Source: Pocillopora damicornis
Lineage: Eukaryota
Length of the DNA: 64,000 nucleotides
Direction of reading: 5' to 3'
Assembly (NCBI RefSeq): GCF_003704095.1
Contig: NW_020846229.1
Span: 124,001-188,000, forward strand
Part shown: positions 12,301 to 18,300 of the stretch, in pieces
Position numbering within the stretch: the stretch's first letter is position 1
Layout of the letters: every line of letters starts with the position of its first letter
Notes under the pieces: generated by a model
What the model was told of the DNA's origin: nothing
Database searches by the model: none
The model's input: the letters and a program-made list of their open reading frames with translations, nothing else
Translations under genes and position numbers: made by a program

Positions 12301-15300
12301 TGAGATTCTTTTCTATTCTCATCGCCTACCTGCTTGATATTGTATTAATATTGTAAGGAGAAATTCTCCCCTGGTCACTTGTGGAAGTGAAAGGGTTAAG
12401 TTTCGAGTAACCAGGAGCTATCTTTTGAAGTCGTAACAGAGTTTCCGAGCCGTAGTGTTCAATTGAGAATAAAGAAGGGCAACGCTTAGTTAACTTCCTA
12501 TTGCTACAACTCGTCTACTCTGTGCGAAACATCAATTACCAGGAGCCAGGGAGAGTGGGAAGGTCACTTTTCCTTTGAAATCCTTCCAAACACTAATTCA
12601 AATTCAAGGTGTTCATGTCAAGAAGCCTTACCGGTGTGTGGAATTAGTGTCATCTCCAGAAACGGTCCCACTAATCCAGGAATGAAGAACGTTTTGTGAT
12701 CACCTGAAAAGAAGAACACAAAAATGTTATCAAATAAATGCGTCAATTTAAATTCTATATTGAAATTTGCCACTGAAACGAGATCATTCAAGATTCATGC
12801 AGTCATCTGAATCACAAACATTTCTACTGTTATAATTTTGGCCAAGAAAAGTCACCTGTCATATTAAGACAACTTGTCTAAAAAAATCTTAACGAACTGG
12901 TTGCTAATATGCTAACTAAAACGCTTCATGAATATGAAAGCGATCTTCGCAATAATGAAAACTGCTTGAGCAGTAGTGAAAATAAAGCCTGAAAAATTTT
13001 CAAGCCTGTACGGGATTTGAATCCATGACCTCTGCGATACCGGTGCAACGCTCTACCAACTGAGCTAACAAACCAATTGGGAGCTGGTCATAACGTTGGT
13101 TCCAAATAAACCCGTGAAGAAGTGAATAAACGACTGTGAATATATGATAGTCATATATTTGAACTGCGGATAAAGACGTGAATATGAAAGCGATCTTCGC
13201 AGTAAAGAACACTACTTGAGCAGAAGAAAAAATAAGACCTGAAAAATATTCAGACCTATACGGGATTTCAGGCCTTATTTTCGCTACTGCTCAAGTAGTG
13301 TTCATTACTGCGAAGATCGCTTTTATATTCACGTCTTTATCCGCAGTTCAAATATATGACTATCATATATTCACAGTCGTTTAAAACCCTACAGCTGTTC
13401 GCGGGTGAAAGATTTCCGGAATAAGAGGGCCCTACATTGAACTGAATGAGCATTGCTTGACTAGAGAACAGCTATGATGACACTGTACATGTCAAGTTTA
13501 GATCAATTCTCACCTAAAAGGTGCCACATCTCACTGATTTTCATTCCAATAATCATACGCATGTCTGCATATCTATAACATAAAATAAGTTGATGTGATC
13601 AGAATTTCAGAACCGTTATTTATCTCAAGCCCACATAATTAGATGTCTCTATTCGACATCCACGAGACGTATAAGTTAAGGTGAGATTTTACTCTTTTTG
13701 CCAAAGCCTGCAAAAGAGAAAACGTCGAGCTACCAACAAGGTAGTATGAGAGGAATCAAACTTAAAACCGGCGGATTTCGCGGTTCACTACTCTTCCACT
13801 GAGCTACAGGGAACACACTAGTGAACTAGACCATGCACTGTGTTCATATGAGTAGCACGTCCTGTATTCTGTTAGGATCAGTGACGTCGAGAGCGTTTTT
13901 CCTTTTTTTGTATAATTTGGACATTGGATATTTGCTTTGGCACAAGCAATATAAATCAAGCAATTATAGATCATGGATGCCGCTGTAGAAGTTAATTTAG
14001 CTTACAATAAAACTTCCGACGGCGCGTTTAATTGAGATACTAACGCCCTCTCTCGTTAAAGAAAAATCTTTAAGATATACATTATCCCCGCTGAAGATTG
14101 GTGTGTGAAACCAATCCCATCGAAGCTTTTTTGGCAATTTCCTTTGTCTTGTGAACTTCTAACCGGAGCGCGGTTTGCAGAAATAATTTTTCCGCAGTTC
14201 ATATGAGAAATTTTAGTTCGGCTACTGTAAGGATATCAGTTGGTGACCACCTTCTTTCTTATAAAAACTCAACGTGATTTTTTACATAGGAAAGCAGTGT
14301 TGGGGTGACATCTCAGAATCGGACCAGCACGGTCATAGAAGCCTCTAGTCACGTAAGGGAGTCTATCTGTCCCCATTCTAGGCGAAATGTGGTCCAATTT
14401 TTGTTTCAAGGTTTGCCGCAAGCTGTTTAGTGAAAACAGATTGCGAAAACCATTCTAACATGTTTAGCCTGGTGTTGATATTTGTACTTGGAGACATGTT
14501 ATAGATCCGTTAGACGAACGAAAAACTCATCCCTTTATGTCACGGCAATTTACAGCCATTTCTCACTTAAGGGTCTCTGTTCGATATTTTTCTTTGTCAG
14601 AAACTGCGTGAGATCTTTCAACACACCCATTGTAAGGAAACATTTAGTTAGTTATCGACGAGAAGTGGTTAAAGTAGAAAAATCGCCCTAAGTGATGTTT
14701 CAAGCTTTGTTAACGAGTTTTACTAATGGAAACACTCAAAAGATTTAAAATGCGTAGCTTTAAATATCTCACTTGGAAGAAACGGAACTCCGTCACGGAA
14801 GTTGCTGCGAAATCTATCAGTTTTTGAAATCACTGTTAAGCACATAATGATCTCCTCTGTGCAGCACGCGCTCAAGCCTGCGAGCAGGCGTTTCTAGAGG
14901 CCTGCGTTTAATGGGAGAAGAAGCTATCTTGGCGCGTTATATTCTTCCCACGCACGCCCCAAAATTGTCTATGAATCTATTACCGGGTGTGCTGTAACCT
15001 CAGTCAGGTACTACGGTCCTAAGTAGGCATTTCAGAGAGACTTGTCAACATCTATTGTTAAAGCCCAGTCCAAATATGACAGACAAAAAAGCAGTTACTT
15101 ACAGTAACCAATCCGATTTCTTATTTGAACGGGCAGGAGCCAATTTGCATTTTATGATAAAAAAGATATCCGCTCGACATTGCTTCCTGGGCACGTAGCA
15201 ACTTTCTATCGGCGGAATATTTTCATGCGCATATCACTCCCTCAAAATCGAATGCGATGAGTTCTAACAGCGAATGTTACGGGGCTCTTCTATTTGTGCA

Positions 15301-18300
15301 GGTTTACTTGATATCCATCGAACTAGTCGACAAGGTTGTTGACGCCGTCATGTTAAAGAAATATAGCGAGGGAAAGGTATCTAACAATCCGCAAGATAGC
15401 GTTTATTATGCCCTTGTTGCTTTTTTTATCACTGGACTTCTCATCAGTTTTGCTCGAATCACACTTTCCATACTGGCAATTAAGAAGCATTGTAGTTCAA
15501 GAGAAGACAGGATCAACGAAGCTATTCGTTTTTGGTCAAGTCTGGCCAAAGTTTGGCTTGAAGCTCTCCCTCAGGCAATTTTTGGAAGGTTTTTCTTTGG
15601 CGAATGTGCAGTAACTGATGACTTAAAACAATGGGGTCAAGCGTTTGGTTTATTTTCCTTGCTCCCATTCATCCTGTTTTTATTCCACCTAATCTACTAC
15701 TGGTGTCCTTATTGTAAATATCAACATGACGAGAAGCCCAATCCACTGACACTCCTTGTCGTGTCTTCAACCCTGAAGGCATCCTTGTTGGGGATTTTTT
15801 GTGCAGTTAAAACCATAATCGCCTTTACCGAACGCTGCACGTTCTAAACAACTTCAAGAAACGTATTGTTGTCGACTGTGAAAGGCCTTCTAGAGCCTGT
15901 TGTTTGATTAAACCGCTCACCATCAAACCCGTTTCGGCCGGGAAGTTATAATAGCACAGTATGTTTTGTTCCGAATCTTAAGCCCCTGTTGTTTTAAATG
16001 ATCATGTATTATTGTAAATCCGCAAGAGGTCAACAGGTTTCCACCACTATTCAGTTAGTGTCTAAATATCGGTTGAGGTACGATGGAAGAAAATGTTTAC
16101 CAATGAAATCACTTGTAACTTAGGTTACTATAGAACTTGTGACAACGAAAGTGCGACGAATTCACTGATAAAATGTTACCTTTTAACCCTTTAACTCCCA
16201 TGAATGACCAAGATAGAATTTTTCCTTACAATATCAATGCAATATCAAACCAGATAAGTGATGAGAATAAAGAAAAATATCAATTTGAGGATAATTAGAT
16301 CATCCAATACTAAATTCTCTGAACTAACATTATAAGAATTGTATGGTTGGCAGTAAGGAGAATTGCAAATTTGATCTGGGAGTTAAAGGGTTAATACGAA
16401 GCTGATGGTTTGTATAGGAAGATAGCTATTTCAATGGGGCTGATCGAAAAATGACAACTATTTATCATGTAATAGAGTTNNNNNNNNNNNNNNNNNNNNN
16501 NNNNNNNNNNNNNNNNNNNNNNNNNNNNNNNNNNNNNNNNNNNNNNNNNNNNNNNNNNNNNNNNNNNNNNNNNNNNNNNTTCCTTTGTTTCACGGCCTCT
16601 TCATCGGACCGCGCTTGAGAGGTTCAATATTTCAGATTCCTCGTTTATGTGAGAATTTAAGATCGATTTTGGAATGAAACTAAGTGAAATGTCCACATGA
16701 GAATTCACTGAGTCGATCGCTTGGATTTCGAAACCGAAAACTCGGTAACGCAGCTAACCTTCCTTCCCACATGAAAAAGTTAATTTACTCCTCCAAAGAA
16801 AAAATTAAGGGTGGTGAGGCGAGATCAGTTTGGAAACCTAGCAACTGAATTGTCCTTGCATATCTACAGCTCCTTAGAAAAACAAGTATGGCTACTCGTC
16901 ACGAAAATCAATCTATCTGGTCCTATCTGTACTCAAAAAGGAAACAAGTAGCTATCAGAGGAGAAAATTTTCATGAACAGTCTGTAATGGAATTTCAACC
17001 TCTCTTTGAGCACATTTTGTTGACTTAAGTTACTTGTCGCAACTGAACTTGTCAAGACACATTTTTCGGAAATGATCCTCAGGCTAAATGCAATTTCTTA
17101 GAAATTGTGATACTTGATATGACTAAACAATCTTTGACTTTTCAAGACCACAAAATAGACATCCTTTGTAAAGGTTCTGTACAAATAAGGCAATCAGTGA
17201 TGATCGCAAAAAGCAGGGCCAATCAGCGTCTCGTTTTGTGACAAACAGGAAACACCTATTGACTCTTGATCACATGGAAAAGTTAGTAAAATTCTAATCA
17301 GTGCTTATTCGGTATCCAAGGTTCATCAGAACACTAAAGGTATTCTTTGATGCGTAAATCAGTCCGTAGTAATCGTATGCAATGTGGTCTGTCGCGAGCG
17401 AGTTCCCTCATGTGCTATTTCATAGCATTTTGATATTGGTTGAAATACCTGACAAAGTCCTTGATGTCATAATTTATTACATGTATTCTAAAGGAGAGAT
17501 TATTAGCCATCCCAGCGACAATGTCACTGCTGCCCTCTTCGCCTTCGTGGGAATTGGATTTGCCATCAGTGTCGCGCGAAAACTATTATGCGGTCACAGA
17601 ATTGTGCAAATATGCTGCAACGGCGACTACAGAGGAGGCGAGACAAACGAGGCCATTCACCTTTGGATGAGTGCAATAAAAGTGTGGCTCGAAGCTTTCC
17701 CTCAAGCACTAATTGCTTACTTTTACTTTGGCGACTGTTCGACAACGACAGACGCGAAACGTTGGGGTCAAATATTTGGTTTCGTTTCTCTACTTCCGTT
17801 CCTGGTGTTTGGTTTCCACCTCTATTATTACTGCGCGTGCTACGATTGCGGTAAAAGATACAGGTATGACAAGGAACCCAATCTACTGATGATGTTTGCA
17901 ATGATCGCCACGCTTCTGTTATCCCTGGGTTGTGTTATTGCCACAATCCACTTGATCATGGATTTCAACAAATTCTGTCAGCCACCGTTGGGTGAGTAGC
18001 ACAGAACTCGTTACCGCGACTCAAAGGCAACGGCGATGCTGCGCTTTGTGTGCAAAATTATTACATTGGAAGTCCCTTTTATAAGCAGTAAAACTCAAAC
18101 AATGCGATCACTTTTCAGAGAACCATAGATCTTTTGACTTGGTTACTACGCTTACCACCGATGGCTGCATATCTGCAGCCACCAATGACTCCATATCTGT
18201 CCATGATACAGTTTAGTGTAAATTTGTCTGAATGTAAAGCCCCTCAATATTGTGCTAGATTTGAGTTTGAAGACCTCAAAGCAAAAAATTCTTTGTTTCA

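Follow-up and report, generated by a model that had tools for sequence, protein, structure and literature searches.

Two intronless Pocillopora genes from an unnamed membrane protein family with a probable distant relationship to Xkr proteins

The Xkr9 fold comprises two repeats that are related to each other, with four transmembrane (TM) helices and a partly inserted helix per repeat (Straub et al., PMC8298096). Its TM3 is kinked at a conserved PQL sequence and is too hydrophilic for prediction from hydropathy, and the Xkr family is characterized by acidic residues of TM1 and TM3 that form a buried cluster (PMC8298096). In mouse Xkr4, residues D123 and D127 (TM1) and E310 (TM3) coordinate extracellular Ca2+, gluing TM1 to TM3 (Zhang et al., PMC10495444); an E310K exchange or a disulfide linking TM1 with TM3 removes the need for calcium (PMC10495444). 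In this study, we analyzed two intronless genes, here called A and B, within a 64,000-nucleotide stretch of the genome of Pocillopora damicornis (contig NW_020846229.1, positions 124,001 to 188,000 of the forward strand; hereafter the window, numbered from its first letter). A preliminary description of these genes, made from the letters alone, had proposed that they encode half-size Xkr-like proteins and had stated that Xkr proteins are built of two internal repeats, which is indeed what has been shown for Xkr9 (PMC8298096).

Our analysis places A and B in an unnamed family of membrane proteins of ~200 residues that is so far known only from coral-associated assemblies. According to the formal model test, they are not members of the Pfam XK-related family. 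Considering two motifs that follow each other in the expected order, the nearest named neighbours assigned by a protein language model and the matches found at the level of the fold, we put the probability that the family is very distantly related to the N-terminal domain of Xkr, at half the size of Xkr proteins, at roughly 55%.

Genes A and B and their protein family

Both genes had been reported as intact open reading frames (ORFs) on the plus strand, strongly diverged yet collinear and with the frame preserved, and each was found exactly where it had been placed (Table 1). They represent the two longest ORFs in positions 1-40000 of the window, where the third longest spans 147 codons. In a BLASTP comparison, 183 residues of the two proteins align at 43% identity (E 4e-47), interrupted by 3 short gaps, and the TM1 and TM3 motifs quoted in the preliminary description occur in both of them. 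The interval between the genes contains a run of Ns, which begins 632 nucleotides past the stop codon of A and ends 802 nucleotides ahead of the ATG of B; since this gap lies outside both ORFs, neither frame depends on it. An identical copy of A is present in the related locus L016, and orthologues of B at 92% and 76% identity are both full-length and intact.

To determine the extent of the family, a profile built from A, B and the two orthologues was run exhaustively with HMMER against 1.84 billion representative proteins. This search returned 45 representatives at E<=1e-3, each 67-302 residues long, with short fragments making up many of the matches; A itself scored E 1.4e-65 against the family profile. 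No name and no NCBI or UniRef record was found among the members, all of which originate from metagenome assemblies in ENA (several of them Tara) and from Logan, and a cluster look-up likewise returned no names or taxa. When B or the family alignment served as the query of a word-index search, near-identical proteins alone were retrieved, a search of the PDB sequences gave nothing relevant for B, and no published description of the family was found in a literature search. All of this agrees with the initial impression that the proteins do not belong to a described family. Pfam matches of A, B and 27 members (GlpM, PAP2 and others) were sub-threshold noise and were discarded. Within its own genome, the family profile finds A and B only; members in other genomes are also intronless and arranged in tandem pairs, in different neighbourhoods.

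Although members share just 20-35% identity, the motif residues are near-invariant. In B numbering, conservation in helix 1 amounts to 26/33 for E21, 29/31 for D24, 24/31 for K25 and 30/32 for D28, and in helix 3 to 34/40 for K100, 35/39 for E104, 38/38 for P107 and 33/38 for Q108. Other near-invariant positions are G59 (35/36), C119 (31/36), F132 (36/36) and C199 (20/23).

For B, AlphaFold produced a confident model from a 41-sequence family alignment (predicted local distance difference test, pLDDT, 82.7; predicted template-modelling score, pTM, 0.76), comprising five long helices at residues 4-36, 46-80, 84-116, 123-155 and 168-198; an alignment of four sequences alone gave an unusable model (pLDDT 47.6). 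Five hydrophobic segments had originally been counted in each protein. The model supports this number of helices, whereas hydropathy detects only helices 1, 2, 4 and 5 and leaves the motif-bearing helix 3 below threshold. The mean numbers of lysine and arginine residues sum to 8.2 for the N-terminus together with loops 2-3 and 4-5, compared to 4.5 for loops 1-2 and 3-4 together with the C-terminus. From this bias, which fits an N-terminus inside and a C-terminus outside, we infer an N-in, C-out topology; in this orientation C119 and C199 would both face outwards, where the two cysteines could form a disulfide.

Evidence bearing on Xkr kinship

A coral Xkr profile was built from an alignment of eight single-exon Xkr proteins encoded in the same genome, and it finds XKR4, XKR8, XK and XKR9 in the PDB. 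Positions D24 and D28 of the coral Xkr proteins correspond to D26 and D30 of human XKR8, and their E137-x-x-P-Q corresponds to the E141 motif of human XKR8 and to LESAPQ of Xkr4. The family hallmarks cited in the preliminary description, a D-x-x-x-D within TM1 and an E-x-x-P-Q within TM3, are accordingly carried by coral Xkr as well as by human XKR8 and XKR4.

When the family profile was compared with the coral Xkr profile using hhalign, helix 1 (residues 8-38) was placed on Xkr residues 8-38, so that D24/D28 fell on D24/D28 (E 2.9e-4, probability 40%). Under permissive settings the alignment became collinear from family residues 1-197 onto Xkr residues 1-226, with EAFPQ on ESAPQ; the C-terminal half of Xkr gave no meaningful match in hhalign. 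Since membrane proteins tend to receive overly favourable HH E-values, shuffle and reversal controls were run. The real comparison scored 30.8, compared to a median of 14.5 and a maximum of 23.8 in 150 shuffles within 15-column blocks, and to 11.5 against the reversed Xkr profile. Taken alone, helix 1 scored 22.2 (null maximum 14.4) and matched the corresponding Xkr motif best, and helix 3 scored 20.1 (null maximum 18.3) and matched best to its own counterpart, Xkr residues 131-147; none of 60 shuffles reached the score in either case.

The language-model neighbours in the ESM Atlas also suggest a link to Xkr. The top cluster for B was auto-named XK-related (score 0.90, 200/256 features), and the clusters bearing PF09815, the Pfam XK-related model, formed the sole Pfam-bearing set among the matches of B. 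For P0015, a member 28% identical to B, PF09815 is present in each of the best three named clusters, whose proteins are 195-264 residues long. At the level of the fold, a VIA-align comparison with 48,161 PDB chains ranked Xkr4, Xkr9 and Xkr8 at positions 6, 7 and 22; they were the best membrane-protein matches, with soluble helical bundles scoring slightly higher.

Other results weigh against this kinship. At E<=10, PF09815 (gathering score 24.8 bits) missed both A and B, at E<=1 it missed each of 27 family members, and a six-frame search of the genome with the same model at E<=10 gave 22 places, none of them within the window. The family profile matched none of the PDB sequences. HH probabilities across the family-Xkr comparisons ranged from 2.6 to 40%, helices 2, 4 and 5 showed no signal when compared with Xkr as separate pieces, and the score fell to 23.6 when a deeper, narrower coral Xkr profile (128 sequences) was used. 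Foldseek retrieved no Xkr chain from the PDB, and re-scoring the Foldseek matches with VIA retrieved none either, while soluble helical bundles matched or exceeded Xkr in VIA-align. Furthermore, the family has no counterpart of the inserted helix IH1 that lies between TM2 and TM3 of Xkr, and has a fifth helix instead. Finally, the language-model and profile evidence may share one cause, namely the two motifs, and would then not be independent; the weak constraint and the broken alleles described below count on the same side.

Many of these points could be accommodated by a lineage-specific small membrane family unrelated to Xkr and with a non-Xkr function, whose motifs arose by convergence or chance in a generic five-helix bundle. 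In its favour stand the absence of a PF09815 match at all thresholds tried, the low HH probabilities with three of the five helices lacking a signal, the empty Foldseek result, the parity of Xkr with generic helical bundles in VIA-align, and a helix count between the motifs that, lacking IH1, is unlike that of Xkr. It is harder to reconcile with two motifs that occupy the right helices in the right order and each score above all shuffles, with the exact residues of the Ca2+ triad being the most conserved positions of the family, with nearest named language-model clusters that all carry PF09815 for two members only 28% identical, and with three Xkr representatives within the top 22 of 48,161 chains. 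We regard the unrelated family as a possible but rather unlikely explanation and favour distant kinship with the Xkr N-terminal domain. Of the half-size Xkr-like proteins originally proposed, the alignment to the N-terminal half, the motifs in register and the language-model neighbours stand, while recognition by PF09815, a high HH probability and a Foldseek match were not obtained.

Searching the word index for relatives of the N-terminal half of coral Xkr proteins gave close coral Xkr relatives throughout the best 120 of 1140 matches and no short PF09815 intermediates among them. Named relatives of canonical Xkr among those 120 come from Pocillopora verrucosa and Stylophora pistillata.

Selection, allelic variation and transcription within the DOCK intron

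Ratios of non-synonymous to synonymous substitution rates (dN/dS) were calculated according to Nei-Gojobori. The ratio was significantly below 1 for B compared with its 76% orthologue (0.50, p 0.007) and for the 92% compared with the 76% orthologue (0.44, p 0.001), but not for B compared with the 92% orthologue (0.61) or for a third paralogue compared between two assemblies (0.79). The comparison of A with B gave ~0.4 with saturated dS. Selection on the family is real yet weak: with ratios of 0.44-0.79, significance was reached only on the longer branches. The purifying selection that had been read from the preserved frames holds weakly, for these longer branches (p 0.001-0.007), whereas on the short branches the ratios did not differ significantly from 1.

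Two broken alleles of B were detected. The first carries a 7-nucleotide deletion (nucleotides 244-250) that shifts the frame, so that codon 94 becomes a stop; two Tara samples, 99.5% identical apart from the deletion, carry it (L022:230-840 and L023:478-1088). The second has lost 183 nucleotides in frame (nucleotides 230-412, 61 codons) and with them helix 3 (L016:10001-10435), and is carried by a near-identical contig of 2.9 Mb, on which gene A does not differ from that of the window. B may be dispensable in some individuals. Among the variants seen in RNA contigs, 7 non-synonymous and 6 synonymous changes affect B, and 4 and 1 affect A, including K26M at the conserved lysine.

These observations raise the question of whether A and B are fast-evolving, dispensable young genes that are transcribed and can be translated yet have little or no current function in this species, and in which the resemblance to Xkr is a relic. 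The dN/dS values of 0.44-0.79 that are not significantly below 1 on short branches, the frameshift and helix-3 deletion alleles of B, the four of five RNA variants of A that alter the protein and the short fragments among many family matches are all in line with this explanation. On the other side stand motif residues that remain near-invariant across members only 20-35% identical, the significant ratios on longer branches, intact alleles expressed in four RNA runs with no frameshifts, and three old paralogue lineages (35-43% identical) that have been retained in related corals. Taken together, we consider dispensable young genes decidedly unlikely.

The third of these lineages is a paralogue of 193 residues that shares 35% identity with A as well as with B and is flanked by the orthologues of both genes at two related loci (L016:6308-6889 and L024:782-1363). 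Its closest relatives are P0048, P0032, P0047 and P0008 (56-61%). It was not found in the genome assembly of the window by the family profile search, and the assembly gap lies in the A-B interval. Both genes of the reported tandem pair were confirmed, but given the third paralogue at related loci, the term pair may be an undercount.

A and B had been described as nested antisense in a DOCK intron, and minus-strand splicing and a Pfam match agree on this point. The splice joint listed in Table 1 ends in CT..AC, equivalent to a minus-strand GT..AG intron, and the neighbouring minus-strand ORF matches Pfam TPR_DOCK with E 1.1e-8, above the cut-off. Because orthologous loci are moreover flanked by DOCK-C2 and TPR_DOCK matches, the host can be identified as a DOCK gene, an identity read from single ORFs.

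Transcription was assessed from assembled RNA contigs of 4 runs from 3 studies, poly(A)-selected or random-primed, which were placed on positions 13300-19000 and show neither strand nor translation. Each gene is covered by discrete contigs, and the surrounding intron is almost silent, with a depth of ~0 over 13873-14445 and of 0-7 over 16547-17119. A and B are therefore separate transcription units and not parts of a retained intron. Plus-strand AATAAA signals lie at 16266, 13 nucleotides before the end of the longest gene A contig, and at 18609, just ahead of the ends of the gene B contigs, which fits mRNAs from the plus strand. No frameshifts or stops in A or B were seen in the RNA contigs of the four runs.

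Chance ORFs within intronic or antisense non-coding transcripts would be another way to account for the locus. The inability of the contigs to reveal strand or translation leaves room for this explanation, as do short out-of-frame ATGs (uATGs) ahead of both starts; the latter open out-of-frame upstream ORFs in the RNA-covered leaders, at 15225 and 15252 for A and at 17350 and 17377 for B. Two ORFs of ~200 codons that are the longest in 40 kb, 43% protein identity between them with the frame kept, homologues elsewhere at 20-92% identity with conserved motifs and a confident AlphaFold model from the family alignment make a non-coding origin highly improbable.

Some further features of the transcribed region were observed. 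The interspersed repeat in or next to the 3' untranslated region (UTR) of A provides the AATAAA at 16266; high RNA depth continues from it to ~16546, and contigs break at 16183/16248 and at 16394-16396. Upstream of A, in positions 14603-15191, RNA contigs of two studies join ~14728/14764 straight to 15191. The ends of this join are non-canonical (TA..GG, GA..GG) with a few extra letters between them, and its upstream part is far more diverged (22 differences in 162 nucleotides). The join represents either an indel polymorphism of ~430-460 bp upstream of A or an unusual 5' exon. At the other end of the locus, gene B contigs stop ~10-35 nucleotides from the boundary of the opposite-strand DOCK exon (18602-18666 compared with 18637) and overlap it in one run, so that the mRNAs of B and DOCK may be convergent and almost touching. 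An insertion resembling a poly(A) run at 18505 in one RNA contig was classified as an indel variant, since the contig still matches beyond it.

Table 1. Coordinates of genes A and B, their motifs and the surrounding features in the window
Feature	Position	Strand	Basis and remarks
Gene A coding sequence	15257..15847	+	196 residues, single exon, ATG start, 0 internal stops
Gene B coding sequence	17382..17999	+	205 residues, single exon, ATG start, 0 internal stops
Gene A helix-1 acidic motif E22-x-x-D25-K26-x-x-D29	15320..15343	+	Sequence; columns conserved family-wide; aligns with Xkr TM1 D-x-x-x-D
Gene A helix-3 motif K98-x-x-x-E102-x-x-P105-Q106	15548..15574	+	Sequence; aligns with Xkr TM3 E-x-x-P-Q
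Gene B helix-1 acidic motif E21-x-x-D24-K25-x-x-D28	17442..17465	+	Family conservation; D24/D28 on Xkr D24/D28 (hhalign)
Gene B helix-3 motif K100-x-x-x-E104-x-x-P107-Q108	17679..17705	+	Family conservation; best segment match is Xkr 131-147
Gene A transcript (RNA contigs)	15162..16284	+ (strand inferred)	Starts 15162/15170/15191/15212, ends 16076/16211/16284; 4 runs
Gene B transcript (RNA contigs)	17316..18625	+ (strand inferred)	Starts 17231/17316/17320/17328, ends 18571/18602/18625/18666
DOCK host intron	13573..18636	-	Splice joint 13572^18637 in 4/4 RNA runs; TPR_DOCK exon 20111-20344
Assembly gap (N run)	16480..16579		Between A and B; outside both ORFs and both main RNA contigs
Interspersed repeat in or next to gene A 3' UTR	16165..16395		Summed RNA contig depth ~1e5; many loose ends at both edges

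A candidate TM1-TM3 lock and comparison with known systems

Helices 1 and 3 may enclose a buried polar cluster of D24, D28 and E104, with the helix-3 glutamate E104 followed by a putative Pro-Gln kink at P107/Q108. Because the Xkr4 triad is kept as D24/D28/E104 and two family-specific lysines, K25 and K100, are added to it, we infer a polar lock between TM1 and TM3; the conserved core would then function much as this site does in the Xkr N-domain. The cluster could bind a divalent cation, or salt bridges via K25/K100 could close it, and self-closure of this kind would parallel the calcium-independent Xkr4 E310K. A more far-reaching scheme would see the proteins as a free-standing Xkr N-domain, either a survivor of a single-repeat ancestor or the product of a secondary split, cation-bound or locked by K25/K100, and acting in homo- or hetero-oligomers (A/B/C) as a scramblase or as a regulator of canonical Xkr. 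In this complete form the scheme is speculative and, in our estimation, unlikely.

Of all Xkr features, the acidic cluster buried between TM1 and TM3 is the most conserved, and it is the proposed calcium switch. A natural protein of ~200 residues that keeps just the TM1-TM3 site would show whether the N-domain folds and binds a cation independently, and would bear on the origin of the two-repeat Xkr fold and on the capacity of half-size units to form active scramblases as oligomers. If A and B are indeed free-standing N-domains, they would provide a minimal system for the role of this domain on its own. Homology with Xkr is at present suggested by weak and partly interdependent signals, and the genes are fast-evolving with broken alleles. 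With the family absent from Pfam, and with neither named entries nor NCBI or UniRef records in the collections searched, its genes have probably been missed in coral gene sets.

Generic membrane bundles of four or five helices, namely sarcospan, the MARVEL proteins synaptophysin and synaptogyrin, and pannexin, share no motifs with the family and show lower identity and fewer aligned residues than Xkr4 and Xkr9; at curated thresholds, no match was found between the family and the Pfam families of sarcospan, MARVEL and pannexin. Proteins of a length similar to that of the family are found in short ESM Atlas clusters (195-264 residues) from molluscs and Euglenozoa, in which 10-42% of the members carry PF09815, and in a mollusc cluster of 224 residues that was given the automatic name 'XK-related protein family protein'. 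These clusters are the nearest neighbours of B and P0015, with scores of 0.82-0.90 and 171-200 shared features, but no alignment or E-value links them to the family, and the HMMER family profile reached no protein bearing PF09815.

The human Xkr family has nine members, and the coral Xkr set is an expansion relative to it. The 22 PF09815 places of the P. damicornis genome include at least 10 canonical Xkr genes, most of them intronless. They are located at C2721:565-589 kb (at least 5 matches in 25 kb), at C1129:45-89 kb and on C2660, C2365, C4289 and C1579, and many of them are arranged in tandem clusters.

Compared to Xkr proteins, with their two repeats and eight TM helices in all, A and B each form one five-helix unit of about half the length without a second repeat, the alignment stopping at Xkr residue 226. 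The family carries lysines at K25 and K100, whereas in Xkr8 and coral Xkr the motif glutamate is preceded, at a distance of four residues, by another glutamate. Only 7-9 residues follow helix 5, so that no C-terminal tail is formed, and a caspase site of the DxxD type is absent from both sequences, as had been noted at the outset. A and B thereby differ from XKR4, XKR8, XKR9 and CED-8, which have a regulatory tail with a caspase DxxD at the C-terminus (at the N-terminus in CED-8), so that caspase control of the XKR4/8/9 type is not expected. Other features are shared: similar to many Xkr genes of the same genome, A and B are intronless; helix 3 remains below the hydropathy threshold, as does TM3 of Xkr9; and D-x-x-x-D in helix 1 and E-x-x-P-Q in helix 3 follow each other in the same order and register as in TM1 and TM3 of Xkr, with D24, D28 and E104 at the positions of the Xkr4 Ca2+ triad D123, D127 and E310.

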